Counted from the stretch's first letter, positions 1 through 64,000 are shown. The stretch is DNA of 64,000 nt from Penicillus capitatus (GCA_965649825.1 OZ287694.1:1885192-1949191), one strand, 5' to 3'. A program made the numbers and translations. Notes: a model not told the origin generated them from the sequence alone.

Positions 1-184
1 GTTAGACGCTGGATTCGGAGTGTCTAAGGCGTGTTGCGAGGCATCACTCAGGTGGCGCTGATGACCTCCACACCTGGCTCCGAACTTTGCGCTCCGCCGC
101 ACGCTTAAGACATACGGCTCCACTGCGCTAATGCCACGCCGCCTTCGGGTGACGCGTCACTGGTTCAGTGGGGAGGGTGGGCTT

Positions 185-285
185 GGGGTTATCCTAGCCA
201 ATCCGGATCTTTCCGGATCGCGTCGAGGGTTTTGGTGCTTCGACGTGAAGGGGTCTGACGAGACGGGTGGCTCCGTCGAAACCCT
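185..285 (+). ncRNA. Hammerhead ribozyme A (type III topology, branched stem I), copy 1
   Basis: GGGGUU/AUCCU (185-195) ... GGGGU-CUGACGA-G-ACGG-GUGGCU-CCGU-C-GAAA-CCC. Stem III is ACCC:GGGU and stem I is AUCCU:GGGGU, enclosing two hairpins. AGCCA after stem I is complementary to loop-2 UGGCU. Predicted cut 190/191. Confidence 0.7.
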
Positions 286-464
286 TAGGTCTTCTGTTGA
301 CGTGTCGTCCGTACCGCGCGCGCTCGAATTACGCGTTCAATTCTCGCTCTCCGTGTTGGATCTCGGCCGATGTCCAGCGCACGGGTAGATCTGCCGACAT
401 CGTCCGCGGGTCTTTTTCCTCCGCCGATTCGATGTCGCGTTCGTTCGCGCTGCGGCGCGGGAAA

Positions 465-535
465 GGGGTCTGATGAGACGGATGGCGCCGTCGAAACCGC
501 AGAGTGCTTCGTTGCATTCGGCGGTCACCCCAGCC
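465..535 (+). ncRNA. Hammerhead ribozyme B (type I), copy 1
   Basis: GGGGU-CUGAUGA-G-ACGG-AUGGCG-CCGU-C-GAAA-CCGC-a-GAGUGC-uucguu-GCAUUC-g-GCGG-UC/ACCCC-AGCC. All core nucleotides and three helices present. Predicted cut 526/527. Confidence 0.92.
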
Positions 536-3444
536 AGTCGTTTTTTTCTTTCTGTCTCTTTTTCGCCTATCTATATCTATGTTTCTGCCTACGTGCGTTA
601 ACACTAACTGACCTTTACAGCCGATGGCAAGGCGATCTGCATGTATGTATGTATGTACACATGCTCCCCGCTCGGCTTTAAAGAAGAATTCTTCGCGCTG
701 TGTCTCTCACTCGTTCGTCCTCCTGCCGTTAAGTGATCTGACCCTAGTTTGTTCAACGTGATGGTAGACTTGGAGGCGACGCATTTTTTTGGTATTGGAA
801 AGTGGACCTTTGTACCTACCTAGACCAGAGTGGCAGAGCAGCAGTCCTCTGGATTTCTGATGAGTGGTTCTTAACAGCACATCAACCTTGTCGATCATCA
901 GGACGCCGACGTTGTGCGACACCGCCGTTGCAACGTATAGCGAGCCCGTGAAGCTTTCGAGTGACCTCATTCTCACAACGTGAACCGGCGATTCTCAAGC
1001 TTGCCGTTGCAACGGCGGACTCCATCGCCCGACCGCTTCATTCGCTCTTGCATCAAGAGAATATCACTCCTCAGCGCTGTCGCCGTCTCCACGTCAAACT
1101 ACGTTTTAAACGGAGCGTTCCGTTCTCCTTCAGGTGGGTGGGTGGGTGTCCTGCAAACAGACGTTGGCTATACACAGTGAGTGACCAGAAGCCCGAGCAA
1201 ATGCAAGACGGCCCTTGGCCTGTCAAATCAGAAGCGCGCTGTTCTCTCTTTGCTTTCCAGTCGTCACACCACAACAGACAGAACCGGTGGCCATGCTGAG
1301 ACTGTCCTGTTTTAACATCCCATCTTCTAGGCGAGACGTTGCGGACCGGAATCGAACTTCTAGGTGCTCTCCCCTGAGCACTGCTGCATTAGGAGTGAAG
1401 ATCACCGGGAGTGTCGCGATATAAACCTATGACATGCATTACCGTTTTGGAGTCCCCGATTCAAGGGACATTGATCGCATCAGAACGCGCCGAAGGACTG
1501 AAGGAAGGTGTTTGTCGACGAACGCATAACACAGCTTTCTGGTGCAAGATCCGACGAGATCGCAGCTGCATGGGTTTATGTCCCACGAGATTCGAAAGGC
1601 CGACACACTCGGTGTGAAGCTAGCCGCCGCCAATCGAGAACAACGAATTCAAGAACTTCGATTCCTCACTTCCAACGAAACCTCTTTCTTCCCGCCGCCG
1701 ACCCTCTTCTGAAGTGTTCCACACTTGGTCGTCGCTCACCGGATTGTTTATTCATATGCCGGCGCTTTCAGATGGAGCAAGATCTGTCACAGCTTCGTGC
1801 GACTGTTGTCCTCGTTCCCGCAGATCATCCCAGTGCGCGTCGTCGCCAGTCATGGTCGCATGGATGCGCCAAACGTGCGAAGTCTACAAGAAGACAAATG
1901 AATGAATGACTCGGCACGCCGTCGGAATACACGACGTTTAAGTAAGTAACAGGCGAGAACAGTTCATTATCTACGAGAAAAGCTACGCGGAGCGAGCGAC
2001 TAGTGCTTTCCCAACTCCGTGCATCGATCGCCCTCAGCAACGTCGTCGCGCCAATGTCCTTTCAGATCGTCCACGTAGCGCCGGTGACACACTAGACGAC
2101 AGCAACTCACCATGTCCGACGAGCCAGACAGAGACTATAAAAATTTACTCCTCTGATGACGATACGAGCAGCTAGCTGGATTCAGACAAGTGAGATTAGA
2201 AAACTCCGTCGCCGCAAAAACACAGACAGATGTTGTGTCAACGTTTCCGATTAGGCAAGGAAGCTTTTGGATGCGCTCGTATCGTGGAAGTAGCAGTTGT
2301 GTGTGCCCTGACGACGATAAGACAGACAGACAGACTTTGGTAGATGCGACCTGAACTTATGCCAAGTGTGGCAGCTTCTGGTTGCGTAAGATTGTCTGTT
2401 TCTCGTGACTGAAGCGTCAGTCAGGTCGTAACAAGGAAGCCTGTCGCGCGGAGTATGAGGCGGTTTTTGATGGAATACAAAGGTTACACAATTGACAACT
2501 TTTCAATGAACAAAACGGAGCGAAAAGGTTACTTACAATCAACTTGTACAGCAAACAGAAATAAAGTAACTCGTAAGCAAAGAAGCAGAACAATTCTAAT
2601 CTAATCTTCTTCTTCCCCTTTTACTTAACCCTTCAGGTGCGACAGCTCGGACCGTCGTCTAAGCCGCCGTGCGTGGTCGGTCTTGAAGTGAGAGGTGAAC
2701 GGGAGAGCCGGTGCGTCATAGGTGTTCTCTGAAAGACTTATGCCAGAATGGATAGAGACATTCACGAAGAGGTCACAGTACTCGGCCAGTCTTCCGAACC
2801 CCCCCAAATGCGTTCGGTAGTTTCTCAAATCTCTCTCCGCGCCTGCTCGAAGAGAACGAACAGCTCTCTAGCCGGTGAGGCAGAGGGAGAGGGGGTTCCA
2901 CTGTTAGTTATGACTCTCCCATCCAGTGGGTTTGAAGAGTGGGAGAGAGGACCACTGGCCGAAGAGGAGTCCAGTGGGATCATCGGATAAACGCTGCTGC
3001 GTTCTTTTGCACATTTGCTGTGATTGTTCTGTCGTAAACCGCTCGTTCGGTGACGACTGTTGCCATTGTAGGCTGCTTTCGCATGTTTACACTTTGACAG
3101 TTTTCACGCTGGTAGATCTGTTCCGTCACCTCCGTTAATGCCCGTCACATTCTCCCCGACACGTGTATGTACGGATAAAAAACCGATCGATAAACGCGCG
3201 CGCAAAGCACGAAGCTATGAAGAACATAGAGTACTATTACATACCATTGTTTCGGTTCGACTCATAAGGATCGAACTCAACTTGACAGTGAAACAACCAG
3301 AGCAGTGAATGCGAATGGAGACGGCCGGTTCGACTTATGGCTGTCGAACCCGTCTTGCCAGAGAAACAGCCAGAGCAGTGAATGCGAATGAAGACAGCCG
3401 GTTCGACTTATGGCTGTCGAACCCATCTTGCCAGAGAAACAGCC

Positions 3445-37304: not shown

Positions 37305-38351
37305 TTAGGTCATCGGGTACATATCGGACGCCTTCTCATCCACTACTTCATCGTCTGCTTCTGAAGTGTACTTGAGATGACCGGAGAAGATTGTAATCGG
37401 ACCATACTTCCCAACAGCTTCCTGGACTTTAAAATGCGAGCCCGGATAGACGTCGACCTTTACTCTTTCCGAACGACTCTGATGAAACGCGCTTCGTTCC
37501 ACCGTCGACCAATCGAAATGAATACTGCTGCTGATCTTGAGCTGAAAAATTCTTCCGAAACCTGCTGACGCACTTACAGACGTAGAGAAAGACCCCGCTC
37601 TCGTCGACTCTCTTTCCAGATTCGTGCCTCTTGCGTATTCCAATTCGACTCCTATTATCGATTTGCCAGCCTTGTTGTCAAACTCCGTGATGGTGACCCA
37701 CTTATCAGACGCTTCCCATTCTTTGTCGCCTTCTTTCCACCCGACAAATCGATTGCGGCCTTGAGTCTTTGATTTCCAGCTACCGCAGTAGAGCACACTG
37801 TTGGTCCAAAGGAAAATAAAATGGTACGGCGCCCTGGCTCTGCGAATCATGAGATTGTCGTTATTCTCGTCGAGATAAAGATGGAAACGTTCCCAGGTGT
37901 GGATCTCTCCCCTTCCTTCGACATCGCCTTCGTCTTCGCAACACAACCATTGCTGAGTTTTGGTGTTTTTGATAGCAAAGACTCCATCGTCGACTATATA
38001 AAGTTCAAATCGATGCGCCTCTTCACAATTCTCTCCGTCGGCGCGGAACCTTCCGCTTCCCGAACGCGCATCGTGACGCACAAACTTCAAGTTTGTGCCG
38101 AGGAGGGCGATGTACCGCGTTCCGACACTGACGCCGTCATTTCCCGGCCCCACTTGAAAACGCCACAGCTGGTCGGTGTTCGTCACTCGGACGGTAGAAG
38201 GATTCTTAACGCTTCGCGTCGGACGCCGTAGCTGGTTGGGGTTCGTCGCTTGGACGGTAGAAGTATTCTTGACACTTCTTGCAGAACGGACCTCGGTTGC
38301 GACTGCCGTTTCAGTAAACAGCAGCAACAATGCGACAGATGTGAAGGACAT
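37305..38351 (-). CDS. Secreted protein (348 aa): fascin-like beta-trefoil plus aerolysin/ETX-MTX2-like pore-forming domain
   Basis: True start MSFTSVALLLLFTETAVA (signal peptide) at 38351, then two 21-aa repeats. Fascin-like motifs (FAIKNTKTQQWLCCEDEGDVEGRGEIHTWERFHL). Alternating Ser/Thr-rich hairpin TRAGSFSTSVSASAGFGRIFQLKISSSIHFDWST flanked by beta strands. Intronless. Domain calls are by pattern recognition only. Confidence 0.65.
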   Translation of the reverse strand: MSFTSVALLLLFTETAVATEVRSARSVKNTSTVQATNPNQLRRPTRSVKNPSTVRVTNTDQLWRFQVGPGNDGVSVGTRYIALLGTNLKFVRHDARSGSGRFRADGENCEEAHRFELYIVDDGVFAIKNTKTQQWLCCEDEGDVEGRGEIHTWERFHLYLDENNDNLMIRRARAPYHFIFLWTNSVLYCGSWKSKTQGRNRFVGWKEGDKEWEASDKWVTITEFDNKAGKSIIGVELEYARGTNLERESTRAGSFSTSVSASAGFGRIFQLKISSSIHFDWSTVERSAFHQSRSERVKVDVYPGSHFKVQEAVGKYGPITIFSGHLKYTSEADDEVVDEKASDMYPMT

Positions 38352-38848
38352 CTCCGAAGCGGGCGGCAGGAAATCAAGGGCCTGCACAAGACAGTCACAT
38401 CGCCATGGAAATCTTGGCGACAAACAGTGACAGTTGAATCAGGATTCATGCCTTCTGTCGTGCGAAAGACACGGCGAGTCGAACTAACGCGCGTAGTGGA
38501 AACGAAACAAAACGGAAACACGCAAAGAATCGATTAAATTACACAGCCCGGCCGTTTCCCGGGATGCTGTCGCCCGTCACTTTAAACAATGAACGAACGC
38601 GCAAGGCGCGTCAGAGAATCTTACTTCTTCGGTGTGTCGAGACTCGTATGGCGTAGAACGTCCTTCGTCTTCCGTCCTCGCGTTGGTATGGAGATCGTCG
38701 CAGAGTCTTCTCACGTCTCCTCGAGTCCATCCCGTCCACTGTAGCTGGTTCACGCGAAAAAAAAACAAAAAAGGCAAAAGGCAAAAGGTAGAGAAAGATG
38801 ATGAATGGATGAAGCAACCGACGCAGCCTTCTGCGTCAGCAGCTTTAG

Positions 38849-38915
38849 GGCTAGGGTGACTGCTCAGTCGAGTGACCGAACAGTTTCGACGGCGCCACCC
38901 GTCTCATCAGACCCC
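38849..38915 (-). ncRNA. Hammerhead ribozyme C (type I), copy 1
   Basis: Minus strand: GGGGU-CUGAUGA-G-ACGG-GUGGCG-CCGU-C-GAA-ACUGUUCGGUC-acuc-GACUGAGCAGU-C/ACCCU-AGCC. 11-bp stem III, 5-bp stem I. Predicted cut between 38858 and 38857. Confidence 0.93.
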
Positions 38916-39016
38916 TTAAGAGTTTTTGCCGATTTAGCGCTATCCAGTCCCGCCACGAGGAGGCACGGCTCGACGTTGCGTTGGCAAACGCACCGCCGTT
39001 GGGACCACATTTTTGT

Positions 39017-39424
39017 GGGGTAATCAATCACGAAATGAAATGCCATTCTTTTGGGGGGTAATCACGAAATGAAATGCCATTCTTTTGGGGGGTAATCACG
39101 AAATGAAATGCCATTCTTTTGGGGGGTAATCACGAAATGAAATGCCATTCTTTTGGGGGGTAATCACGAAATGAAATGCCATTCTTTTGGGGGGTAATCA
39201 CGAAATGAAATGCCATTCTTTTGGGGGGTAATCACGAAATGAAATGCCATTCTTTGGTAATCACGAAATGAAATGCCATTCTTTGGTAATCACGAAATGA
39301 AATGCCATTCTTTGGTAATCACGAAATGAAATGCCATTCTTTGGTAATCACGAAATGAAATGCCATTCTTTGGTAATCACGAAAGTGCCTTGGGTAATCA
39401 CGAAAGTGCCTTGGGTAATCACGA
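39017..39424. repeat. 29/34-bp satellite GGTAATCACGAAATGAAATGCCATTCTTT, 11 units plus 2 degenerate
   Basis: Six 34-bp units (extra TGGGG) followed by five 29-bp units; no spacers. Confidence 0.95.
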
Positions 39425-39998
39425 GGATGTCCTTCCTTCCGGGATTCCTCAACCAGGTCGAAGGGAAGGCCCGCCTACGGGAGGCGGCCTCCCACTTCGC
39501 CTTCGGGACTAACGGGTGGGCCCGACGCCGTAGAAGCCGTTCAACAGTCCGCGCCACAACGGTCGCACGATTGCCGCCATCGACGGCAGCGTCTCATGCG
39601 CTGTGTGAAAGGATCTTTTTCGACGGACAACCGAACGACGAGTTCGACGTAGTGGGACCGGAGCTGCGCAACTGTGGGGGAGTATCTCCCGGAAAGAAGG
39701 GCCATCCGAGGATGTCCCCCCGATCCGAGATTCCTCAACCAGGTCAAAGCAAAGGCCGCCTACAGGAGACGACCCTTACCCCGCCTTCGGGACTAACGGG
39801 TGGGCCCGACGCCGCAGAAGCCGCTCAACGGCCCCCGCCACAACCGCCGCACGATTGCCGCCGTTCTCGGCAGCGTCTCATGCGCTGTGTGAAGGTCTTC
39901 GATACTGCAAAACTTCAATATGACGGACAATCGAACGACGCGTTCGACGCATCCGGACTGGAACTGCGCAACTACGGGGGAGTATCTCACGGAAAGAA
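39422..39998. repeat. Diverged tandem dimer of a 285-bp GC-rich hairpin-rich module
   Basis: CGAGGATGTCC starts at 39422 and 39707. Both units keep CC-TTCG-GG, GCAGCG/CGCTGT and GGGAG/CTC(C/A)C inverted repeats. Also at 59641-60217. Confidence 0.85.
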
Positions 39999-40023
39999 AG
40001 ACGAAAAATGGTGCGCGTCATCA

Positions 40024-40337
40024 CTTATATACCCCTTCAGATGATGTGACAGCGTCACATCGTTTTGTCGCGCAATCAGCCAATCACGACGCGAGTTCAG
40101 AGTACCAACCGTCGGAAGAAGAAGCAGGGAGGAAGGCGTCGATGCAGCCGATAGCCAATCACGTTCCGGTTTGGGAATATTCCATCTGTCACATCAGAAT
40201 ATTCCATCTGTCACATCAGAATATTCCATCTCCGTCGTCGGTTTTTCGTCGATTCGGCCACTCAGCGCGCATCTATGGCAGTCTAACCGTCCTCAAGGTG
40301 ACGTTGACAGGGTCGCGTCAACATCCAAGTATTTAAG
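40024..40337. promoter_or_regulatory. Putative bidirectional Pol II promoter
   Basis: TATATAAG on the minus strand (40031-40024) and TATTTAAG on the plus strand (40330-40337). CCAAT at 40080 and 40155, palindrome GATGTGAC-agc-GTCACATC, and 22-bp repeats x2.5. Second copy at 60243-60556. Confidence 0.5.
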
Positions 40338-40440
40338 GGGCACCGCGACGCGCATTTCGTCTTTTGTCGTTTGGGCGGTTCTACTGGTGGCGTTCTCGCT
40401 CGCGGGTTTCGGCTCGGAACTTAAACGCTTTCCGGGGTCA

Positions 40441-40745
40441 GTGCTGCCACATGCTGTAAGCCGACCAACACGATGCGTGGGCTGCGGAGAGGCACCCCTC
40501 GTGAGCGGGGGAAAGCCGACGATCTTCAGTCACCGCACCGTAGTTGGCGCCTGCGAAGGTCGTTAGACGCTGTATTCGGAACTCAGAACGCCTACCGGGC
40601 TAGTGCTGCCACATGCTGTAAGTCGACCAACACGGTGCCGTTAGCTATGGGGAGGCACCCCCTCGGGGGCGGGGGGAAACCGAGGATCTATAACCACCGC
40701 ACCGTATTGGCGCCTGCGAAGGTCGTTAGACGCTGGACTCGGAGT
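40441..40745 (+). repeat. Diverged tandem dimer of a 162-bp structured module
   Basis: GTGCTGCCACATGCTGTAAG starts at 40441 and 40603. Long stems CCAACACG.TGC / GCACCGTA.TTGG in both units. Also at 60660-60964; its tail is visible at 1-20. Confidence 0.85.
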
Positions 40746-40908
40746 GTCTAAGGCGCGTTGCGAGGCTTCCCTTCGGGGAAGCTGATGACCTCCACACCTG
40801 GCTCCGAACTTTGCGCTCCGCCGCACGCTTAAGACATACGGCTCCACTGCGCTAGTGCCACGCCACCTTCGGGTGACGCGTCGCTGGTTCAGTGGGGAGG
40901 GTGGGCTT

Positions 40909-41009
40909 GGGGTCATCCTAGCCGTTCCGGATCTTTCCGGACCGCGTCGAGGGTTTTCGTGCCTCGACGCGAAGGGGTCTGACGAGACGGGTGGCGCCGT
41001 CGAAACCCT
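40909..41009 (+). ncRNA. Hammerhead ribozyme A (type III topology), copy 2
   Basis: GGGGUC/AUCCU-AGCC ... hairpin CGCGUCGAGG:CCUCGACGCG ... GGGGU-CUGACGAG-ACGG-GUGGCG-CCGU-CGAAACCC. Canonical GUC site; predicted cut 40914/40915. Confidence 0.78.
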
Positions 41010-41191
41010 AACTAAGTCTTCCGTTTACGTGTCGTCCGTACCGCGCGCGCTCGAATTACGCGTTTTGTTCTCGCTCTCCGTGTCGGAGCTCGGTCGATGT
41101 CCAGCGCACGGGTAGATCTGCCGACATCGTCCGCGGGTCTTCTTCCTCCGCCGATTCGATGTCGCGTTCGTTCGCGCTGCGACGCGGGAAA

Positions 41192-41262
41192 GGGGTCTGA
41201 TGAGACGGGTGGCGCCGTCGAAACCGCAGAGTGCTTCGTTGCATTCGGCGGTCACCTCAGCC
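41192..41262 (+). ncRNA. Hammerhead ribozyme B (type I), copy 2
   Basis: Same fold as 465-535. Stem I 3' strand is ACCUC (C-G changed to U.G, pairing kept). Predicted cut 41253/41254. Confidence 0.92.
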
Positions 41263-44058
41263 AGTCGTTTTTTTTTCTTTCTGTCTCTTTATCGCCTATT
41301 TGTATCCATGTTTCTGCCTACGTGCGTTAACACTAACTGACCTTCACAACCGATGGCAAGGCGATCTGCATATGTGTGTATGTGTGTACACATGCTCCCC
41401 GCTCGGCTTTAAAGAAGAATTCTTCGCGCTGTGTCTCTCACTCGTTCGTCCTCCTGCCGTTAAGTGATCTGACCCTAGTTTGTTCAACGTGATGGTAGAC
41501 TTGGAGGCGACGCATTTTTTTGGTATTGGAAAGTGGACCTTTGTACCTGCCTAGACCAGAGTGGCAGATCAGCAGTCCTCTGGATTTCTGACGAGTGGTT
41601 CTTAACAGCACATCAACCTTGGCGATCATCAGGACGCCGACGTTGTGCGACACCGTCGTTGCAACGGATAGCGAGCCCGTGAAGCTTTCGAGTGACCTCA
41701 TTCTCACAACGTGAACCGGCGATTCTCAAGCTTGCCGTTGCAACGGCGGACTCCATCGCCCGACCGCTTCATTCGCTCTTGCATCAAGAGAATATCACTC
41801 CTCAGCGCTGTCGCCGTCTCCACGTCAAACTACGTTTTAACGGAGCGTTCCGTTCTCCTTCAGGTGGGTGGGTGTCCTGCAAACAGACGCTGGCTATACA
41901 CAGTGAGTGACCAGAAGCCCGAGCAAATGCAAGACGGCCCTTGGCCTGTCAAATCAGAAGCGCGCTGATCTCTCTTTGCTTTCCAGTCGTCACACCACAA
42001 CAGACAGAACCGGTGGCCATGCTGAGACTGTCCTTTTTTAACATCCCGTCTTCTAGTCGAGACGTTGCGGACCGGAATCGAACTTCTAGGTGCTCTCCCC
42101 TGAGCACTGCTGCATTAGGAGTGAAGATCACCGGGAGTGTCGCGATATAAACCTATGACATGCATTACCGTTTTGGAGTCCCCGATTCAAGGGACATTGA
42201 TCGCATCAGAACGCACCGAAGGACCGAAGGAAGGTGTTTGTCGACGAACGCATAACACAGCTTTCTGGTGCAAGATCCGACCGAGATCGCAGCTGCATGG
42301 GTTTATGTCCCACGAGATTCGAAAGGCCGACACACTCGGTGTGAAGCTAGCCGCCGCCAATCGAGAACAACGAATTCAAGAACTTCGATTCCTCACTTCC
42401 AACGAAACCTCTTTCTTCCCGCCGCCGACCCTCTTCTGAAGTGTTCCACACTTGGTCGTCGCTCACCGGACTGTTTATTCATATGCCGGCGCTTTCAGAT
42501 GGAGCAAGATCTGTCACAGCTTCGTGCGACTGTTGTCCTCGTTCCCGCAGATCATCCCAGTGCGCGTCATCGGTCATGGTCGCATGGATGCGCCAAACGT
42601 GCGAAGTCTACAAGAAGACAAATGAATGAATGACTCGGCACGTCGTCGGAATACACGACGTTTAAGTAAGTAACAGGCGAGAACAGTTCATTATCTACGA
42701 GAAAGGCTACGCGGAGCGAGCGACTAGTGCTTTCCCAACTCCGTGCTTCGATCGCCCTCAGCAACGTCGTCGCGCCAATGTCCTTTCAGATCGTCCACAT
42801 TTTAGCGCCGGTGACAGACACACTAGACGACAGCAACTCACCATGTCCGACGAGCCAGACAGAGACTATAGAAATTTACTCCTCTGATGACGATACGAGC
42901 AGCTAGCTGGATTCAGACAAGTGAGATAAGAAAACTTCGTCGCTGCAAAAAACACAGACAGATGTTGTGTCAACGTTTCAGATTTGGCAAGGAAGCTTTT
43001 GGATGCGCTCGTATCGTGGAAGTAGCAGTTGTGTGTGCCCTGACGACGATAAGACAGACAGACGTCGGTAGATGCGACCTGGACTTATGCCAAGTGTGGC
43101 AGCTTCTGGTTGCGTAAGATTGTCTGCTTCTCGTGACTGAAGCGTCAGTCAGGTCGTAACAAGGAAGCCTGTCGCGCGGAGTATGAGGCGGTTTTTGATG
43201 GAATACAGAGGTTACACAATCAACAACTTTTCAAAGGACAAAACGGAGTGAAAAGGTTGCTTACAATCAACTTGTACAGCAAACAGAAAGAAAGTAACTC
43301 GTAAGCAAAGAAGCAGAACAATTCTAATCCAATCTTCTTCTTCCCCCTTTTGCTTAACCCTTCAGGTGCAGACAGCTCGGACAGTCGTCTAAGCCGCCGT
43401 GCGTGGTCGGTCTTGAAGTGAGAGGTGAACGGGAGAGCCGGTGTGTCATAGGTGTTCTCTGAAAGACTTATGCCAGAATGGATAGAGACATTCACGAAGA
43501 GGTCACAGTACTCAGCCAGTCTTCCGAACCCCCCCCAAATGCGTTCGGTAGTTTCTCAAATTTCTCTCCGCGCCTGCTCGAAGAGAACGAACAGCTCTCT
43601 AGCCGGTGAGGGAGAGGGAGAGGGAGAGGGGGTTCCACTGTTAGTTATGACTCTCCCATCCAGTGGGTTTGAAGAGTGGGAGAGAGGACCACTGGCCGAA
43701 GAGGAGTCCAGTGGGATCATCGGATAAACGCTGCTGCGTTCTTTTGCACATTTGCTGTGATTGTTCTGTCGTAAACCGCTCGTTCGGTGACAACTGTTGC
43801 CATTGTAGGCTGCTTTCGCATCTTTACACTTCGACAGTTTTCACGCTGGTAGATCTGTTCCGTCACCTCCGTTAATGCCCGTCACATTCTACCCGACACG
43901 TGTATGTACGGATAAAAAACCGTTCGATAAACGCGCGCGCAAAGCACGAAGCTATGAAGAACATAGAGTACTATTACATACCATTGTTTCGGTTCGACTC
44001 ATAAGGATCGAACTCAACTTGACAGTGAAACAGCCAGAGCAATGAATCTGAATGGAAA

Positions 44059-44612
44059 CAGCCAGTTCGACTTATAGAGAGGTCGAACTCATGTTGCAGA
44101 GACGATGCGTGCGCTTGCCAGAAAAACAGGCCAGGGTCAGCCCCGGCGGACAAACAGCCGGTTCGACTTATAGAGAGGTCGAACTCTTGTTGCTCAGACG
44201 ATGCATGTGCTTGCCAGAAAAACAGGCCAGGGTCAGCCCCGGCGGAAAAACAGCCGGTTCGACTTATAGAGAGGTCGAACTCTTGTTGCAGAGACGATGC
44301 GTGTGCTTGCCAGAAAAACAGGCCAGGGTCAGCCCCGGCGGAAAAACAGCCGGTTCGACTTATAGAGAGGTCGAACTCTTGTTGCTCAGACGATGCATGT
44401 GCTTGCCAGAAAAACAGGCCAGGGTCAGCCCCGGCGGAAAAACAGCCGGTTCGACTTATAGAGAGGTCGAACTCTTGTTGCTCAGACGATGCGTGTGCTT
44501 GCCAGAAAAACAGGCCAGGGTCAGCCCCGGCGGACAAACAGCCGGTTCGACTTGTAGAGAGGTCGAACTCTTGTTGCTCAGACGATGCGTGTGCTTGCCA
44601 GAAAAACAGGCC
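44059..44612. repeat. 96-bp hairpin tandem repeat, about 5.5 units
   Basis: Same unit as 3445-4116. Confidence 0.95.
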
Positions 44613-47148: not shown

Positions 47149-47447
47149 CGCGGTTATGTTTGAGGAAGTCTGAAAACCAAACGCCAGTAGTTTTCGTGTA
47201 AAGTGGCAGAAAACGCAAAGTCCGTAAAACCCTAACCAACAACAGTCCGTACTGCGCTCGTAATTAATTTATACAAGCTTAATGAATTAATGGAAAAATT
47301 AGCTCAATCTACGGTTAGGTTTCCGAACTCGCGTCGCCATTGGCTGGATATCGACAAGTCGTTCAAACTAATTAAGTAATTACCCCAGTTTTTACGACGC
47401 TTCATTCACGTCACGTTGACGTCGTTAACGACAGCACGGGACGTCAT

Positions 47448-47716: not shown

Positions 47717-47718
47717 GT

Positions 47719-57422: not shown

Positions 57423-58578
57423 ATGTTAGTGATTGTTTTCGTGGGGGCTTCTTAACTGTTTTCGGAGTTGGCGGGAAGCGTGGTGTCGCCGAGCGATGTG
57501 ACGCTGCCTCGTTTCTGAGAAGGCCACATCCTGGGGGGGGTCTTGGTTGAATCACCCAAGGCCATTTTCTCTGGTTTTGAGGCTAGGGTGATTCACCTGC
57601 CTCGTCGAGTCGCATCACCATGCGAGTATATAACGCGCAGTTAGAACCACTGAACGCCTTGCTCTGTAACTTGTGAAGTCTTCCGCTGTTATCGTTTTCG
57701 TTCGGCGCCTCCGCGCGACATAAAGTTCAAATCGATGCGCCTCTTCACAATTCTCTCCGTCGGCGCGGAACCTTCCGCTTCCCGAACGCGCATCGTGACG
57801 CACAAACTTCAAGTTTGTGCCGAGGAGGGCGATGTACCGCGTTCCGACACTGACGCCGTCATTTCCCGGCCCCACTTGAAAACGCCACAGCTGGTCGGTG
57901 TTCGTCACTCGGACGGTAGAAGGATTCTTAACGCTTCGCGTCGGACGCCATAGCTGGTTGGGGTTCGTCGCTTGGACGGTAGAAGTATTCTTGACACTTC
58001 TTGCAGAACGGACCTCGGTTGCGACTGCCGTTTCAGTAAACAGCAGCAACAATGCGACAGATGTGAAGGACATCTCCGAAGCGGGCGGCAGGAAATCAAG
58101 GGCCTGCACAAGACAGTCACATCGCCGTGGAAATCTTGGCGACAAACAGTGACAGTTGAATCAGGATTCATGCCTTCTGTCGTGCGAAAGACACGGCGAG
58201 TCGAACTAACGCGCGTAGTGGAAACGAAACAAAACGGAAACACGCAAAGAATTGATTAAATTACACAGCCCGGCCGTTTCCCGGGATGCTGTCGCCCGTC
58301 ACTTTAAACAATGAACGAACGCGCAAGGCGCGTCAGAGAATCTTACTTCTTCGGTGTGTCGAGACTCGTATGGCGTAGAACGTCCTTCGTCTTCCGTCCT
58401 CGCGTTGGTATGGAGATCGTCGCAGAGTCTTCTCACGTCTCCTCGAGTCCATCCCGTCCACTGTAGCTGGTTCACGCGAAAAAAAAAACAAAAAAGGCAA
58501 AAGGCAAAAGGCAAAAGGTAGAGAAAGATGATGAATGGATGAAGCAACCGACGCAGCCTTCTGCGTCAGCAGCTTTAG

Positions 58579-58645
58579 GGCTAGGGTGACTGCTCAGTCG
58601 AGTGACCGAACAGTTTCGACGGCGCCACCCGTCTCATCAGACCCC
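58579..58645 (-). ncRNA. Hammerhead ribozyme C (type I), copy 2
   Basis: Identical by eye to 38849-38915. Confidence 0.93.
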
Positions 58646-58746
58646 TTAAGAGTTTTTGCCGATTTAGCGCTATCCAGTCCCGCCACGAGGAGGCACGGCT
58701 CGACGATGCGTTGGCAAACGCACCGCCGTTGGGACCACATTTTTGT

Positions 58747-59643
58747 GGGGTAATCACGAAATGAAATGAAATGCCATTCTTTTGGGGGGTAATCACGAAA
58801 TGAAATGCCATTCTTTGGTAATCACGAAATGAAATGCCATTCTTTGGTAATCACGAAATGAAATGCCATTCCTTGGTAATCACGAAATGAAATGCCATTC
58901 CTTGGTAATCACGAAATGAAATGCCATTCTTTGGTAATCACGAAATGAAATGCCATTCTTTGGTAATCACGAAATGAAATGCCATTCTTTTGGGGGGTAA
59001 TCACGAAATGAAATGCCATTCTTTTGGGGGGTAATCACGAAATGAAATGCCATTCTTTTGTAATCACGAAATGAAATGCCATTCTTTTGGGGGGTAATCA
59101 CGAAATGAAATGCCATTCTTTTGGGGGGTAATCACGAAATGAAATGCCATTCTTTGGTAATCACGAAATGAAATGCCATTCTTTGGTAATCACGAAATGA
59201 AATGCCATTCTTTGGTAATCACGAAATGAAATGCCATTCTTTGGTAATCACGAAATGAAATGCCATTCTTTGGTAATCACGAAATGAAATGCCATTCTTT
59301 GGTAATCACGAAATGAAATGCCATTCTTTGGTAATCACGAAATGAAATGCCATTCTTTGGTAATCACGAAATGAAATGCCATTCTTTGGTAATCACGAAA
59401 TGAAATGCCATTCTTTGGTAATCACGAAATGAAATGCCATTCTTTGGTAATCACGAAATGAAATGCCATTCTTTGGTAATCACGAAATGAAATGCCATTC
59501 TTTGGTAATCACGAAATGAAATGCCATTCTTTGGTAATCACGAAATGAAATGCCATTCTTTGGTAATCACGAAATGAAATGCCATTCTTTGGTAATCACG
59601 AAAGTGCCTTGGGTAATCACGAAAGTGCCTTGGGTAATCACGA
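58747..59643. repeat. 29/34-bp satellite, expanded copy (roughly 28 units)
   Basis: Same unit as 39017-39424, about twice as long, mostly 29-bp units. Confidence 0.95.
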
Positions 59644-61127
59644 GGATGTCCTTCCTTCCGGGATTCCTCAACCAGGTCGAAGGGAAGGCCCGCCTACGGG
59701 AGGCGGCCTCCCACTTCGCCTTCGGGACTAACGGGTGGGCCCGACGCCGTAGAAGCCGTTCAACAGTCCGCGCCACAACGGTCGCACGATTGCCGCCATC
59801 GACGGCAGCGTCTCATGCGCTGTGTGAAAGGATCTTTTTCGACGGACAACCGAACGACGAGTTCGACGTAGTGGGACCGGAGCTGCGCAACTGTGGGGGA
59901 GTATCTCCCGGAAAGAAGGGCCATCCGAGGATGTCCCCCCGATCCGAGATTCCTCAACCAGGTCGAAGCAAAGGCCGCCTACAGGAGACGACCCTTACCC
60001 CGCCTTCGGGACTAACGGGTGGGCCCGACGCCGCAGAAGCCGCTCAACGGCCCCCGCCACAACCGCCGCACGATTGCCGCCGTTCTCGGCAGCGTCTCAT
60101 GCGCTGTGGTAAGGTCTTCGATAGTACAAAACTTCAATATGACGGACAATCGAACGACGCGTTCGACGCATCCGGACTGGAACTGCGCAACTACGGGGGA
60201 GTATCTCCCGGAAAGAAAGACGAAAAATGGTGCGCGTCATCACTTATATACCCCTTCAGATGATGTGACAGCGTCACATCGTTTTGTCGCGCAATCAGCC
60301 AATCACGACGCGAGTTCAGAGTACCAACCGTCGGAAGAAGAAGCAGGGAGGAAGGCGTCGATGCAGCCGATAGCCAATCACGTTCCGGTTTGGGAATATT
60401 CCATCTGTCACATCAGAATATTCCATCTGTCACATCAGAATATTCCATCTCCGTCGTCGGTTTTTCGTCGATTCGGCCACTCAGCGCGCATCTATGGCAG
60501 TCTAACCGTCCTCAAGGTGACGTTGACAGGGTCGCGTCAACATCCAAGTATTTAAGGGGCACCGCGACGCGCATTTCGTCTTTTGTCGTTTGGGCGGTTC
60601 TACTGGTGGCGTTCTCGCTCGCGGGTTTCGGCTCGGAACTTAAACGCTTTCCGGGGTCAGTGCTGCCACATGCTGTAAGTCGACCAACACGATGCGTTGG
60701 CTGCGGGGAGGCACCCCTCGTGAGCGGGGGAAAGCCGACGATCTTCAGTCACCGCACCGTAGTTGGCGCCTGCGAAGGTCGTTAGACGCTGTATTCGGAA
60801 CTCAGAACGCCTACCGGGCTAGTGCTGCCACATGCTGTAAGTCGACCAACACGGTGCCGTTAGCTATGGGGAGGCACCCCCTCGGGGGCGGGGGGAAACC
60901 GAGGATCTATAACCACCGCACCGTATTGGCGCCTGCGAAGGTCGTTAGACGCTGGACTCGGAGTGTCTAAGGCGCGTTGCGAGGCTTCCCTTCGGGGAAG
61001 CTGATGACCTCCGCACCTGGCTCCGAACTTTGCGCTCCGCCGCACGCTTAAGACATACGGCTCCACTGCGCTAGTGCCACGCCACCTTCGGGTGACGCGT
61101 CGCTGGTTCAGTGGGGAGGGTGGGCTT

Positions 61128-61228
61128 GGGGTCATCCTAGCCGTTCCGGATCTTTCCGGACCGCGTCGAGGGTTTTCGTGCCTCGACGCGAAGGGGTCTG
61201 ACGAGACGGGTGGCGCCGTCGAAACCCT
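61128..61228 (+). ncRNA. Hammerhead ribozyme A (type III topology), copy 3
   Basis: Identical by eye to 40909-41009. Confidence 0.78.
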
Positions 61229-61410
61229 AACTAAGTCTTCCGTTTACGTGTCGTCCGTACCGCGCGCGCTCGAATTACGCGTTTTGTTCTCGCTCTCCGT
61301 GTCGGAGCTCGGTCGATGTCCAGCGCACGGGTAGATCTGCCGACATCGTCCGCGGGTCTTCTTCCTCCGCCGATTCGATGTCGCGTTCGTTCGCGCTGCG
61401 ACGCGGGAAA

Positions 61411-61481
61411 GGGGTCTGATGAGACGGGTGGCGCCGTCGAAACCGCAGAGTGCTTCGTTGCATTCGGCGGTCACCTCAGCC
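61411..61481 (+). ncRNA. Hammerhead ribozyme B (type I), copy 3
   Basis: Identical by eye to 41192-41262. Predicted cut 61472/61473. Confidence 0.92.
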
Positions 61482-64000
61482 AGTCGTTTTTTTTTTCTTT
61501 CTGTCTCTTTATCGCCTATTTGTATCCATGTTTCTGCCTACGTGCGTTAACACTAACTGACCTTCACAACCGATGGCAAGGCGATCTGCATATGTGTGTA
61601 TGTGTGTACACATGCTCCCCGCTCGGCTTTAAAGAAGAATTCTTCGCGCTGTGTCTCTCACTCGTTCGTCCTCCTGCCGTTAAGTGATCTGACCCTAGTT
61701 TGTTCAACGTGATGGTAGACTTGGAGGCGACGCATTTTTTTGGTATTGGAAAGTGGACCTTTGTACCTGCCTAGACCAGAGTGGCAGATCAGCAGTCCTC
61801 TGGATTTCTGACGAGTGGTTCTTAACAGCACATCAACCTTGGCGATCATCAGGACGCCGACGTTGTGCGACACCGTCGTTGCAACGGATAGCGAGCCCGT
61901 GAAGCTTTCGAGTGACCTCATTCTCACAACGTGAACCGGCGATTCTCAAGCTTGCCGTTGCAACGGCGGACTCCATCGCCCGACCGCTTCATTCGCTCTT
62001 GCATCAAGAGAATATCACTCCTCAGCGCTGTCGCCGTCTCCACGTCAAACTACGTTTTAACGGAGCGTTCCGTTCTCCTTCAGGTGGGTGGGTGTCCTGC
62101 AAACAGACGCTGGCTATACACAGTGAGTGACCAGAAGCCCGAGCAAATGCAAGACGGCCCTTGGCCTGTCAAATCAGAAGCGCGCTGATCTCTCTTTGCT
62201 TTCCAGTCGTCACACCACAACAGACAGAACCGGTGGCCATGCTGAGACTGTCCTTTTTTAACATCCCGTCTTCTAGTCGAGACGTTGCGGACCGGAATCG
62301 AACTTCTAGGTGCTCTCCCCTGAGCACTGCTGCATTAGGAGTGAAGATCACCGGGAGTGTCGCGATATAAACCTATGACATGCATTACCGTTTTGGAGTC
62401 CCCGATTCAAGGGACATTGATCGCATCAGAACGCACCGAAGGACCGAAGGAAGGTGTTTGTCGACGAACGCATAACACAGCTTTCTGGTGCAAGATCCGA
62501 CCGAGATCGCAGCTGCATGGGTTTATGTCCCACGAGATTCGAAAGGCCGACACACTCGGTGTGAAGCTAGCCGGCGCCAATCGAGAACAACGAATTCAAG
62601 AACTTCGATTCCTCACTTCCAACGAAACCTCTTTCTTCCCCGCCGCCGACCCTCTTCTGAAGTGTTCCACACTTGGTCGTCGCTCACCGGACTGTTTATT
62701 CATCTGCCAGCGCTTTCAGATGGAGCAGGATCTGTCACGGCTTCGTGCGACTGTTGTCCTCGTTCCCGCAGATCATCCCAGTGCGCGTCGTCGGTCATGG
62801 TCGCATGGATGCGCCAAACGTGCGAAGTCTACAAGAAGACAAATGAATGAATGACTCGGCACGTCGTCGGAATACACGACGTTTAAGTAAGTAACAGGCG
62901 AGAACAGTTCATTATCTACGAGAAAGGCTACGCGGAGCGAGCGACTAGTGCTTTCCCAACTCCGTGCTTCGTTCGCCCTCAGCAACGTCGTCGCGCCAAT
63001 GTCCTTTCAGATCGTCCACGTTTTAGCGCCGGTAACACACTAGACGACAGCAACTCATCATGTCCGACGAGCCAGACAGAGACTATAAAAATTTACTCCT
63101 CTGATGACGATACGAGCAGCTAGCTGGATTCAGACAAGTGAGATAAGAAAACTTCGACGAGCCACACAAAGACTATAGAAATTTACTCCTCTGATGACGA
63201 TACGAGCAGCTAGCTGGATTCAGACAAGTGAGATTAGAAAACTCCGTCGCCGCAAAAACACAGACAGATGTTGTGTCGACGTTTCCGATTTGGCAAGGAA
63301 GCTTTTGGATGCGCTCGTATCGTGGAAGTAGCAGTTGTGTGTGCCCTGACGACGATAAGACAAACAGACAGACGTCGGTAGATGCGACCTGAACATCTGC
63401 CAAGTGTGGCAGCTTCTGGTTGCGTAAGATTGTCTGTTTCTCGTGACTGAAGCGTCAGTCAGGTCGTAACAAGGAAGCCTGTCGCGCGGAGTATGAGGCG
63501 GTTTTTGATGGAATACAAAGGTTACACAATCAACAACTTTTCAAAGGACAAAACGGAGTGAAAAGGTTGCTTACAATCAACTTGTACAGCAAACAGAAAG
63601 AAAGTAACTCGTAAGCAAAGAAGCAGAACAATTCTAATCTAATCTTCTTCTTCCCCCTTTTACTTAACCCTTCAGGTGCGACAGCTCGGACAGTCGTCTA
63701 AGCCGCCGTGCGTGGTCGGTCTTGAAGTGAGAGGTGAACGGGAGAGCCGGTGCGTCATAGGTGTTCTCTGAAAGACTTATGCCAGAATGGATAGAGACAT
63801 TCACGAAGAGGTCACAGTACTCGGCCAGTCTTCCGAACCCCCCCCAAATGCGTTCGGTAGTTTCTCAATCTCTCTCCGCGCCTGCTCGAAGAGAACGAAC
63901 AGCTCTCTAGCCGGTGAGGCAGAGGGAGAGGGGGTTCCACTGTTAGTTATGACTCTCCCATCCAGTGGGTTTGAAGAGTGGGAGAGAGGACCACTGGCCG

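Follow-up and report, generated by a model that had tools for sequence, protein, structure and literature searches.

The window considered here, a stretch of 64,000 nucleotides of DNA from Penicillus capitatus, raises the question of what kind of genetic unit would carry hammerhead ribozyme motifs facing outwards near both of its edges and a promoter-like region between them. A preliminary description of the locus read it as a divergent cassette, in which a bidirectional promoter separates two structured transcription units, one ending leftwards in a hammerhead (C, minus strand) and the other rightwards in two (A and B, plus strand). The locus is a repeat unit of about 2.5 kb (window positions 38767-41279), non-coding and present in multiple copies. 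Its recurrence elsewhere shows the unit to be a defined genetic element, not something arranged by chance.

Extent of the unit and its copies

The limits of the unit are seen in comparisons with two other loci: homology with both L005 and L008 begins at 38767, and homology with L005 stops at 41279. The left edge is marked by a T-rich tract of the minus strand (38756..38790, A-rich on the plus strand) and the right edge by a T-tract of the plus strand (41268..41279, with Ts at 41268-41277). The edges fall inside these T-rich tracts, and neither a target-site duplication nor sharp termini can be defined at them; some pairs of copies have flanks in common beyond the edges of the unit.

The copies of the unit are all from a single metagenome assembly, and a few of them may be alleles or strain variants of one another. 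Within the window there is a second full copy (58486..61500), with hammerhead C at 58640 (minus strand), A at 61198 (plus strand) and B at 61416 (plus strand). There is also a partial third copy (1..560, plus strand), cut by the start of the window and 93-96% identical to 40725-41290. It retains the right-arm tail, the T-tract and both rightward hammerheads, with the cores of A and B at 255 and 470 respectively. The duplicate that had been reported at 58579-61481 is a real copy but not the product of a separate event: it belongs to the next repeat of a segmental duplication of 17-20 kb, and because it lies within so large a duplication it provides no independent evidence.

The copies in the window and in L004, L006, L007 and L009 are related through large duplications that include flanking genes. 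The flanks of L005 and L008 are unrelated to those of the window. In L005 the unit sits among the housekeeping genes ESF1, uL13 and SF3A3, and a solo fragment of hammerhead B, inverted, lies at 11737-11675 of the same locus. L008 contains two adjacent cassettes, the shorter of which has neither the satellite nor most of the 285-bp dimer described below. The L006 copy has three tandem copies of a transposable element directly to its left, and the L007 copy is truncated after hammerhead A and has no hammerhead B. The region of the window is itself rich in transposable elements, including a gypsy element (whose polyprotein has no exact match on record), a gag-like element and a small inverted-repeat element.

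The best-conserved parts of the unit are the promoter-like centre and the domains of hammerheads A and C, while the internal repeats vary or are absent. Comparison of the window with L005 gives an identity of 92-100% for the centre and the domains of hammerheads C and A, but of only 20-80% for the tail of the right arm and the latter half of the A-B spacer. Loci at which the other parts of the unit have diverged to about 76% still have the same head-to-head pair of hammerheads and the same centre. Conservation this high could reflect gene conversion between copies rather than selection; mosaic monomers are seen. The two arms were said to be unrelated in sequence apart from the hammerhead core, and indeed a hammerhead block of 35-55 nt is all that they have in common. 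The parallel architecture claimed for them holds for the outward hammerheads and the centre but does not extend to the dimers and the satellite, which are inconstant.

Hammerheads A, B and C

A hammerhead ribozyme has three helices (I, II and III) that radiate from a core (C3 U4 G5 A6 N7 G8 A9 ... G12 A13 A14, with an A15.1-U16.1 pair and at H17 any nucleotide except G), and its self-cleavage produces a 5'-OH and a 2',3'-cyclic phosphate. The window has 8 occurrences of a 28-nt core, CTGAnGAGACGGGTGGCGCCGTCGAAAC, as against none in 100 shuffles. A strict descriptor, demanding the core together with a helix I of at least 4 bp, a helix II of at least 4 bp and a helix III of at least 5 bp, finds exactly the same 8 motifs, each with its three helices, and finds none in 100 dinucleotide shuffles. 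The scissile bonds that it predicts, 38858/38857 on the minus strand for C, 40914/40915 for A and 41253/41254 for B, are those predicted earlier, and the three hammerheads are real, face outward and are strongly conserved.

Hammerhead C (38853..38915, minus strand) is of type I, with a helix I of 5 bp, a helix II of 5 bp and a helix III of 11 bp. The cut is predicted after C38858, and in window-type copies the 3' product would begin with ACCCUAGCCCUAA. Hammerhead B (41192..41258, plus strand; predicted cut after C41253) is also of type I, with helices I and II of 5 bp each and a helix III of 5+6 bp. The canonical three-way junction appears in the minimum-energy structure of B and in the centroid structure of C. 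Hammerhead A (40907..41008, plus strand; predicted cut after C40914) is of type III, with a helix III of 5-7 bp, a helix II of 5 bp and a helix I of 5 bp that closes a branch with two conserved hairpins; it is 97-100% identical to its counterpart in L005.

Across 29 of 29 hammerhead copies (from the window, L001 and L004-L009) the core is invariant except at N7, which is U or C. The changes in the stems mostly keep pairing, and those in hammerhead B of L005, L006 and L008 all fall in loops or bulges or preserve pairing. The predicted cleavage triplet is GUC, or GUU in one copy of A.

The hammerhead models of Rfam (RF00163, RF00008 and RF02275-RF02277) give no match at the gathering score, nor at E<=10 over 4 kb or in the 106 nt around B, probably because the long helix III of B and C and the branched helix I of A lie outside the models. 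An exact-pattern scan for the core found nothing in viral contigs or in prokaryotic genomes and one match in the JGI metagenomes. This is L001, a lone hammerhead in an unrelated context and from a metagenome other than that of the unit copies. A search of the literature for the hammerhead sequence as a string found no match.

Two further candidates were set aside. The CUGAUGA at 40782 does not mark an additional hammerhead, having no GAAA/A15.1 arrangement and not being conserved in L005. The CCCUAAC inside hammerhead A brought to mind the template of a telomerase RNA, an idea ruled out by the lack of conservation of the motif between copies.

The promoter-like centre

Two TATA-like boxes face outward from the centre, TATATAAG to the left (40031-40024, minus strand) and TATTTAAG to the right (40330-40337, plus strand), and between them are two identical CCAAT boxes, AGCCAATCACG, at 40078 and 40153 (spanning 40078..40163, plus strand). 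These elements, found just where they had been described, are invariant in all five aligned copies, within a centre that is nearly invariant even in divergent copies. The left box, whose octamer is present also in both LTRs of the gypsy element of the window, is adjoined by a palindrome, GATGTGAC-N3-GTCACATC (40040..40062), and the right box is preceded by another, GTTGAC-N8-GTCAAC (palindrome and box together at 40303..40337, plus strand). A 22-bp sequence, GAATATTCCATCTGTCACATCA, repeated 2.6 times (40175..40231), carries a GAAnnTTC motif and a recurring TGTCACATCA motif. The sequence alone suggests that the centre is a bidirectional promoter and that transcription would start from it in both directions.

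The two arms

Leftwards from the centre lies a 285-bp dimer (39422..39998, minus strand), whose monomers are about 80% identical to each other and which is 95-100% identical to the dimer of L005. It is followed by a satellite (39003..39424) with units of 34, 29 and 21 bp (GGTAATCACGAAATGAAATGCCATTCTTT...), the 34/29-bp units occupying 39026-39371 and the 21-bp repeat 39368-39424; the number of satellite copies is different in every copy of the unit. A conserved stretch (38916..39002, minus strand; 95-97% identical to L005 and L006) comes just upstream of hammerhead C. Beyond C, 18 nt downstream of its predicted cleavage site, is a conserved hairpin of 8-9 bp (38818..38839, minus strand), in which the changes between copies are from U-G to C-G and from A-U to G-U, so that pairing is kept in the minus-strand RNA. 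Directly after the predicted cleavage site is CCCTAGCCCTAA, a dimer resembling the C strand of a telomere, which occurs nowhere else in the window. It is found in window-type copies and in L006, and its place is taken by CCACGA in L005 and L008.

Rightwards, a 162-bp dimer (40414..40743, plus strand; monomers 84% identical) leads to the right-arm tail (40744..40906, plus strand), with UUCG-capped hairpins near 40764-40781 and 40864-40875. The number of 162-bp units is two in the window, one in L006 and zero in L005, L007 and L008. The tail is the site of three compensatory base-pair changes between copies. Over the right arm of 5 copies, 98% of the cells pair in the structure made up of hammerheads and hairpins, compared to 34-51% when partners are slid, and one-sided changes of a pair proceed via G-U. 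Hammerheads A and B are 218 nt apart, separated by a spacer (41009..41191, plus strand) whose first half is conserved, whose second half is variable and whose length varies between copies. The sequence surrounding the two is not a repeated monomer, direct repeats around them amounting to only about 55 nt. The preliminary description had placed the dimer, satellite, hammerhead and T-tract of the left arm correctly to within a few bases, and the dimer, UUCG hairpins, hammerheads and T-tract of the right arm at or near their actual positions.

It had also supposed both transcription units to be structured, and in this regard the arms differ. The consensus of the 285-bp dimer folds at -102.7 kcal/mol on the minus strand versus -65.0 on the plus strand, and the first left-arm monomer has a z-score of -4.2 on the minus strand, in agreement with the claim. 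The 162-bp monomers of the right arm give no fold-energy signal, contrary to it, and the z-scores of the unit are mostly unremarkable. The RNA between the predicted cleavage sites of A and B (40915-41253) would measure 339 nt, and with a z-score of -0.3 it has no unusual stability. A run of T5 occurs in neither arm ahead of the terminal T-tract, as expected by chance at such a length, and a conserved T4 run lies inside hammerhead A; both bear on a reading of TATA box and T-tract as signals of Pol III.

Coding potential and neighbouring genes

Relatives of the only long ORF of the unit are confined to its own repeat family, amongst 1.84 billion representative proteins; the 237-aa ORF was used by itself as the protein bait. 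A bait made by concatenating 12 spurious ORFs of the cassette found no relative among the 8000 candidates listed. That 285 and 162 bp are multiples of 3 invited the thought that the two repeats might be coding. This was rejected: the differences between two monomers are evenly spread over the codon positions (12/18/15), without bias, and there are no outside relatives. By these signs the unit is unlikely to encode a protein. Nor was a reverse transcriptase, a GIY-YIG domain, any other mobilising gene or a coding partner for the unit found in the window or in the loci and flanks examined; a Pfam scan of 25 longer ORFs from the window, L005, L007 and L008 encountered reverse transcriptase only in the gypsy element.

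Hammerhead C had been noted to lie upstream of a toxin-like gene in the same orientation, with the suggestion that cleavage might insulate that gene from read-through. The arrangement is as described, the predicted site being 506 nt before the first ATG (38351) of a 348-aa ORF. The toxin-like label could not be confirmed: a sequence search of PDB turned up only beta-trefoil FGFs, at E of about 0.3, and the AlphaFold model of the protein has a mean pLDDT of 40, too poor for a fold search. The association of the unit with this gene is incidental, because the units of L005 and L008 have quite different neighbours and that of L006 adjoins transposable-element copies on its left. Paralogues of the gene in L002 and L003 are not accompanied by a hammerhead, and because gene order differs there, these loci cannot serve as empty sites.

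Comparison with known ribozyme-bearing repeats

Hammerheads in eukaryotic genomes are so far known from a few settings: in the terminal repeats of Penelope-like elements, in retrozymes, in satellites and in a few intronic or UTR motifs. A Penelope-like element encodes a reverse transcriptase resembling that of telomerase, in some cases together with a GIY-YIG endonuclease, and may be bounded by pseudo-LTRs, direct terminal repeats that arise from partial tandem insertion. Those deficient in the endonuclease have short reverse-complement telomeric repeats beside the hammerhead and a telomeric location. The hammerheads of fungal and protist elements have been described as type I ribozymes whose helix III is large and which lack loop-loop contacts (PMC4209133), and insertions often comprise an inverted truncated copy beside an upstream pseudo-LTR, with the hammerheads in terminal repeats (PMC8557442, PMC4209133). 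Hammerheads B and C resemble those of the endonuclease-deficient elements (PMC4209133; PMC8557442) in being of type I, with a helix III that is long and stable, a helix I that is short and open, and no obvious loop-loop contacts. By this analogy both should be active as monomers. Also alike are the position of the ribozyme near the end of a repeat and, in some copies of the unit, the C-strand telomere-like motif beside it. Unlike those elements, the unit has no reverse transcriptase ORF and no pseudo-LTRs (the two arms, like the surroundings of A and of B, have only the 35-55-nt hammerhead block in common), its ribozymes face outward from a central promoter-like region, one of them is of type III, the telomere-like motif is not kept in every copy and the locus lies away from the contig ends.

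In a plant LTR retrozyme a non-coding region of 600-1000 nt lies between two LTRs of about 350 bp that each contain a type III hammerhead, and there are also a primer-binding site, a polypurine tract and a 4-bp target duplication. The metazoan non-LTR retrozyme consists of tandem monomers of 170-400 bp, each with one type I hammerhead. As in retrozymes (PMC4918200; PMC7229834; bioRxiv 10.64898/2026.07.22.740005), the unit is non-coding and non-autonomous, carries hammerheads, contains a promoter-like region and has two ribozymes on the same strand, A and B, bounding an RNA of 339 nt that could circularise. It differs from the plant type in that it has no direct repeats of the size of those LTRs, that A and B are of different topologies (type III and type I), that no primer-binding site or polypurine tract was noticed and that no target duplication is visible at the edges of the L005 copy. 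It differs from the metazoan type in that no repeated monomer surrounds A and B, the unit not being a tandem array of hammerhead monomers. It is unlike both in having a second, divergent putative transcription unit with a hammerhead of its own and an A-B RNA of no unusual stability.

Newt satellite 2 and the Sm-alpha repeat of Schistosoma are likewise repeated non-coding DNA with RNA processed by a type I hammerhead, but their monomers, tandem or SINE-like, are short and have a single ribozyme, as opposed to a unit of 2.5 kb with a bidirectional promoter-like centre and three ribozymes. A functional analogy may be drawn to the ribozyme-flanked cassettes of the laboratory, in which the RNA made from a promoter has its end set by a hammerhead and not by polyadenylation, except that the unit is natural, two-sided and multi-copy. 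The layout of a two-way promoter-like centre with outward hammerheads has not been described for the known ribozyme-bearing repeats.

What the unit may be

Since its hammerheads match the kind, type I with a long helix III, that fungal and protist elements of the Penelope-like and retrozyme types are reported to have, the unit is most likely a non-autonomous relative or derivative of such elements. The fuller reading that I prefer, with slightly less than even confidence, is that of a non-autonomous repeat related to retrozymes or Penelope-like elements, whose central promoter gives rise to two divergent non-coding RNAs with 3' ends cut by hammerheads. The parts that remain constant are the TATA/CCAAT centre and the outward hammerheads close to the two edges, with a T-rich tract after them on either side. 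The centre would drive the two transcripts, of which the leftward would be cut by hammerhead C to leave, in the window copy, an RNA of about 1.1 kb, and the rightward by hammerhead A to leave one of about 0.55 kb. A second cut by hammerhead B, 339 nt beyond that of A, would release an RNA bounded by hammerheads, with a 5'-OH and a 2',3'-cyclic phosphate, which is the kind of RNA that can be circularised. Any transcript continuing beyond the unit would be cut off from the RNA that bears the cap. The motifs, their conservation and the dispersed copies are observations, whereas transcription, self-cleavage, circularisation and the mode of spread are what I infer.

A more radical proposal, which I hold doubtful, is that the unit represents a previously undescribed type of gene terminated by ribozymes: a compact bidirectional promoter module with a hammerhead at each outward edge, on one side a type III ribozyme whose conserved helix I is branched, on the other a type I ribozyme. 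It would produce divergent non-coding RNAs that owe their 3' ends to self-cleavage and, by severing read-through into its neighbours, be self-insulating and portable, either domesticated by the host or mobile without a poly(A) tail, an LTR or a terminal inverted repeat. It is unlikely, though conceivable, that the unit is instead an immobile family of host genes for non-coding RNA, spread by segmental duplication, in which a bidirectional and possibly stress-responsive promoter gives rise to two functional long non-coding RNAs with 3' ends formed by hammerhead cleavage instead of polyadenylation. A centre and hammerhead domains far better conserved than the rest, the GAAnnTTC motifs of the 22-bp repeat, the large duplications (flanking genes included) that link the copies of the window, L004, L006, L007 and L009, and the failure to find transposition machinery, a target-site duplication or a poly(A) tail would all suit such a family. 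Yet the RNA bodies are inconstant, in their 162-bp units (two, one or none), in satellite number and in the reduced L008 cassette, and a functional RNA body is therefore hard to reconcile with them. Furthermore, the truncated copies and solo hammerhead fragments resemble the decay of transposable elements, the flanks of L005 and L008 are unlike those of the window, and the same core appears in a different context in another metagenome (L001).

The arms, unrelated apart from the hammerhead block, might also be fragments of two or more unrelated hammerhead retroelements that met head to head by chance between genes, were copied passively and now undergo neither transcription nor cleavage, as the abundance of transposable elements in the region (gypsy, gag-like and small inverted-repeat), the instability of the internal repeats and the absence of a partner reverse transcriptase from what was searched might lead one to think. 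I consider this distinctly unlikely: the core is intact in 29 of 29 copies, with substitutions at N7, in loops or such as preserve pairing, the TATA and CCAAT boxes are invariant, and the head-to-head pair and its centre persist at loci where the rest of the unit has diverged. The preliminary description had offered a Penelope-like inverted terminal structure, in which the cassette would join an inverted, 5'-truncated copy to a forward one or else form the terminus of an endonuclease-deficient, telomere-associated element. Inverted truncated copies are frequent in Penelope-like insertions, whose terminal repeats have hammerheads (PMC8557442, PMC4209133), and CCCTAGCCCTAA, unique in the window, comes right after the predicted cleavage site of C. 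The proposal is not sustained in that form and seems to me very unlikely, in view of arms that are not inverted copies of one another, direct repeats of only about 55 nt around A and B, no pseudo-LTRs, the failure to find an ORF for a reverse transcriptase or GIY-YIG domain in the window and the loci examined, the replacement of the telomere-like motif by CCACGA in L005 and L008, and the position of the window-type array some 290 kb inside a contig of 1.84 Mb. Hammerheads on both strands of one 2.5-kb unit also recall viroid-like or ambivirus-like circular RNAs with ribozymes in both polarities, but descent from a DNA copy of one is scarcely credible for a unit with a DNA-type promoter centre of TATA and CCAAT boxes, variable tandem repeats, mostly unremarkable fold-energy z-scores, hammerheads near the edges that face outward, unlike those of a permuted monomer, and no RdRp-like ORF or ORF with relatives outside.

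Whether as the non-autonomous repeat that I prefer or otherwise, the unit combines a constant centre and outward ribozymes of two topologies with RNA bodies that vary freely between them. The conserved, branched helix I of hammerhead A would be of interest to those who study the structure of ribozymes. If transcription and cleavage are confirmed, ribozymes would define both ends of a divergent transcription unit. The unit would then provide a natural example of 3'-end formation and insulation based on ribozymes, and a tractable case in which to learn how hammerhead repeats spread without enzymes of their own.

Hammerhead Motifs and Their Conservation

All the elements listed in the preliminary description of a divergent self-cleaving RNA cassette are present (window 38400-41700 and 58300-61600 inspected). 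The 28-nt block CTGAnGAGACGGGTGGCGCCGTCGAAAC occurs eight times within the window, against a shuffle expectation of none, with starts at 255, 470, 40979, 41197, 61198 and 61416 on the plus strand and at 38910 and 58640 on the minus strand. A strict hammerhead descriptor was applied, calling for a complete catalytic core, a minimum of 4 bp in each of helices I and II, a minimum of 5 bp in helix III with A15.1-U16.1 among them, and any base but G at position 17. It matched these eight motifs and no others, and it had no hits in 100 dinucleotide-preserving shuffles of the 64-kb sequence. It bore out the scissile bonds proposed earlier, after 40914 (hammerhead A), after 41253 (B) and, on the minus strand, after 38858 (C). 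Hammerheads B and C belong to type I, helix I being open and helix III long. In hammerhead A, of type III, UUGGGGU (40907-40913) pairs with ACCCUAA (41002-41008) to make helix III, and helix I closes a branch that bears two hairpins. ViennaRNA gave the canonical three-way junction in the minimum-energy structure of B and in the centroid structure of C. Neither the gathering score nor a cutoff of E ≤ 10 on 4 kb brought up any Rfam hammerhead family, and the 106 nt around B gave none either; the assignment is therefore supported by the descriptor and by conservation and not by any curated model.

N7 is the only free position of the hammerhead core. Among the 29 hammerhead copies collected, every catalytic core position is unchanged save N7, which is U or C. 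In the copy at locus L005, helix III of hammerhead B carries five changes, two in bulges, two in the loop and one from U-A to U-G; in the L006 copy, the loop of that helix has a 3-nt insertion, and the change of A1.1 to G still pairs with U2.1. The helix I variants (ACCUC, ACCCC and ACCCU) each pair with GGGGU. Changes in hammerhead C are confined to the helix III loop and N7, and a hairpin 18 nt downstream of its cleavage site keeps its pairing through U-G to C-G and A-U to G-U replacements. For the right arm (the plus-strand RNA), a five-copy alignment was compared with a hand-drawn structure consisting of two upstream hairpins and hammerheads A and B: 98% of cells were paired, as against 34-51% when partners were slid by 1-3 columns. 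Shuffle controls were exceeded only moderately, the observed values being reached by 14-53 of 500 shuffles. Compensatory changes appear at three pairs, all within the upstream hairpins; covariation proper is weak because most hammerhead pairs never vary.

Copies of the Unit and Its Limits

The second cassette in the window, offered earlier as evidence, is not independent of the first. Self-comparison makes 32159-47380 and 49170-64000 two units of a 17-20 kb segmental duplication, with 1-7530 a repeat of 40725-48250, and the cassette is duplicated together with the toxin-like ORF and with genes for an ion channel and a repeat protein. The channel gene is TRP/YVC1-like (Pfam Ion_trans; 50488-52133 and 33500-35100, and 3414-5059 in locus L007).

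The toxin-like ORF has only three relatives among 5.8 billion proteins, all in the ENA metagenome assembly ERZ25074695; one of their loci, L004, repeats the window unit at 95-99% identity together with its cassette, and no hammerhead was found in L002 and L003, the loci of toxin-like paralogues. The bait for further copies was a spurious 237-aa ORF running through the left-arm dimer, whose only matches in a set of 1.84 billion representative proteins are itself and two more, P0005 and P0006. More members came from cluster look-up, and the contigs of these relatives led to five further loci. L007 (286-307 kb in a 1.84-Mb contig, truncated directly after hammerhead A) and L009 are window-type units, and L006 is a diverged paralogous unit of 82-88% identity. 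L008 holds two adjacent cassettes, the second a short form that lacks the satellite and retains only a minor part of the 285-bp dimer; near them lies a 1458-aa ORF (L008 1261-5637) of parallel beta-helix-like 'GG...N.T.N.A' repeats with no Pfam match. L005 sits in a 1.17-Mb contig with flanks unrelated to the window's, among housekeeping genes (GDP-mannose pyrophosphorylase-like, FAA hydrolase, ESF1, uL13, SF3A3), and has an inverted 64-nt fragment of hammerhead B about 440 bp past its right edge. Its uL13 protein, compared with PDB chains, scores best with plant, then animal, then fungal. A eukaryotic-type assimilatory nitrate reductase gene, which speaks against an animal source, adjoins the toxin-like paralogues, two of them in tandem in L003. 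The source is taken to be a non-metazoan eukaryote with a G+C content of about 50%. Finally, a JGI metagenome contig (L001, Ga0099817_1511750) has a lone hammerhead core, identical in 32 of 33 aligned bases, beside a trypsin-like exon. This hammerhead (355-450) has helix II and its loop as in the window but for one base, and lies about 170 nt upstream of an ORF whose end resembles a trypsin-type protease; with helix I and helix III both poor, this is possibly a decayed copy from a related organism.

Homology between the window and L005 runs from 38767 to 41279, with a T-rich tract at either end. The interval first described, 38849-41262, lies inside this unit, leaving out some 80 bp of it at the left end and 17 bp at the right. 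The boundaries of the unit are blurred: homology with the window reaches 41403 (L006) and 41499 (L008) on the right and 38458 (L006) on the left, L005 and L008 have in common 527 bp past their own left edge, and no target-site duplication was identified at the edges of the unit.

Identity between the window and L005, compared in sliding windows, is very uneven. Values of 92-100% are seen in hammerhead A together with the hairpins of its helix I, in the promoter-like centre, in the 285-bp dimer, and in hammerhead C along with 140 nt on its upstream side. They drop to just 20-80% in the tail of the right arm and in the latter half of the spacer between A and B. Two copies of the 162-bp unit stand in the window, L004 and L009, one in L006 and none in L005, L007 and L008, and the copy number of the satellite differs in each copy of the unit. 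Because these repeats vary in number while the centre and hammerheads are conserved, the constant core of the family is hammerhead C, the centre and hammerhead A (plus B), with the repeats in between as variable cargo.

The Promoter-Like Centre and the Arms

The outward-facing TATA boxes, TATATAAG (40031-40024, minus) and TATTTAAG (40330-40337, plus), are where they had been placed, with two identical CCAAT boxes, AGCCAATCACG, in between. Each TATA box has an adjoining palindrome, and the middle of the centre is a 22-bp repeat present 2.6 times. Alignment of five copies shows no change in either TATA box, in either CCAAT box or in most of the 22-bp repeat, and the two palindromes hardly vary. 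TATAWAAG occurs only five times in 64 kb: in two gypsy LTRs, one small element and both cassettes. Since the gypsy LTRs are among the five sites, the octamer is used in at least one bona fide promoter context. A motif, TGTCACATCA, recurs within the centre in both orientations (40175-40231 and 40040-40062), and the 22-bp repeat bears GAATATTC (GAAnnTTC), resembling a heat-shock element; both, largely conserved in the five copies, are candidate factor-binding sites. The 34/29/21-bp satellite (39003-39424; unit GGTAATCACGAAATG...) and the two CCAAT boxes (GCCAATCACGA/T; 40078-40163) have AATCACGA in common; rather than being an RNA element, the satellite could consist of arrayed near-copies of a promoter motif.

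The arms are indeed unrelated, a hammerhead block of 35-55 nt being the only sequence common to both. The consensus of the left-arm 285-bp dimer (39422-39998) folds at -102.7 kcal/mol as minus-strand RNA, against -65.0 for the plus strand, with minus-strand z values of -4.2 (monomer 1) and -1.8 (monomer 2). Nearly all predicted pairs hold in eight left-arm monomers, and only one covaries; the monomers are mosaics, which suggests that they went through gene conversion. There is no fold-energy signal for the 162-bp monomers (dimer at 40414-40743) or for the 339-nt A-B RNA, and the right-arm tail folds better on the wrong strand. The term "structured" thus suits the left arm and the local hairpins but not the unit as a whole. 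A coding reading of the repeats was rejected: differences between the two 285-bp monomers are spread evenly by codon position (12, 18 and 15, with 27 gap columns), the multiples of three are a coincidence, and the 237-aa ORF has no relative beyond its own repeat family in the representative protein set.

Neighboring Genes and Elements

Hammerhead C is upstream of and co-oriented with the toxin-like ORF (37305-38351, minus), as had been noted, with 506 nt to its ATG. The association is local, since other copies of the unit have other neighbors. The 348-aa product looks secreted, with a signal-peptide-like N-terminus and a beta-rich body; it has no match in Pfam and no family assignment, only marginal similarity to beta-trefoil FGFs, and a predicted model of low confidence (pLDDT 40). 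The label "toxin-like" is putative.

An apparently intact Ty3/gypsy retrotransposon occupies 22673-27943, with a 1476-aa gag-protease-RT-RNase H-integrase ORF (23119-27549, minus) and two LTRs, 100% identical over the 300 nt aligned, that both contain a TATATAAG box; this family also has a solo LTR fragment directly left of the L005 cassette (L005 7990-8328). A 2.7-kb insertion (55037-57720) with a gag-like zf-CCHC ORF (56517-57422) splits the toxin-like ORF of the third unit, and the 7-bp overlap of its flanking alignments (37998-38004) suggests a target duplication. Three tandem copies of this element, with a 1450-bp period, are directly left of the L006 cassette (L006 4251-8836). An element of about 500 bp, in inverted orientation at 7023-7530 and 47731-48251, looks like a small mobile element; in L004 (9310-9819) a copy sits between the toxin-like ORF and hammerhead C, where the window has an empty site. 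Downstream of the right arm are long arrays of 96-bp and 30-bp tandem repeats (3368-4243 and 43960-45360). They show a strong excess of A over T, are open in more than one frame and weakly match the Pfam 'Decapeptide' repeat; they may represent a gene for a repeat protein that shares the right arm's direction of transcription.

Interpretation

Starting from the presence and conservation of the motifs, which are observed, I infer each later step. The centre would fire both ways; the leftward RNA would be cut by C and the rightward RNA by A, then by B; the T-rich tracts just beyond the cut sites may aid termination; and the A-B piece is a candidate circular RNA. Among the readings considered I rate this mechanism, taken whole, as the most likely, though tentatively, at slightly less than an even chance. 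That the unit is instead a host non-coding RNA gene family seems unlikely. Dead transposable-element debris, to be set beside catalytic cores unchanged in 29 copies, is a doubtful reading, a true junction of a Penelope-like element (PLE) is improbable, and an endogenised circular RNA is scarcely credible.

The hammerheads of fungal and protist PLEs are type I, with a large helix III, active as monomers and without recognisable loop-loop contacts (PMC4209133), a description that the predicted hammerheads of the unit fit. In endonuclease-deficient PLEs, the hammerhead is paired with short reverse-complement telomeric repeats (PMC8557442). Directly after the C cleavage site stands CCCTAGCCCTAA, found nowhere else within the window; L005 and L008 have CCACGA there, so it is not a defining feature. 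Among the 25 longer ORFs of the window, L005, L007 and L008 that were scanned against Pfam, the gypsy element alone yielded a reverse transcriptase, and there is no tRNA gene within the window. Retrozymes are the other obvious relatives (PMC4918200, PMC7229834, bioRxiv 10.64898/2026.07.22.740005). Since the unit, unlike them, has neither LTRs nor tandem hammerhead monomers, I place it outside the named families and file it as a new variant among hammerhead-bearing non-autonomous repeats.
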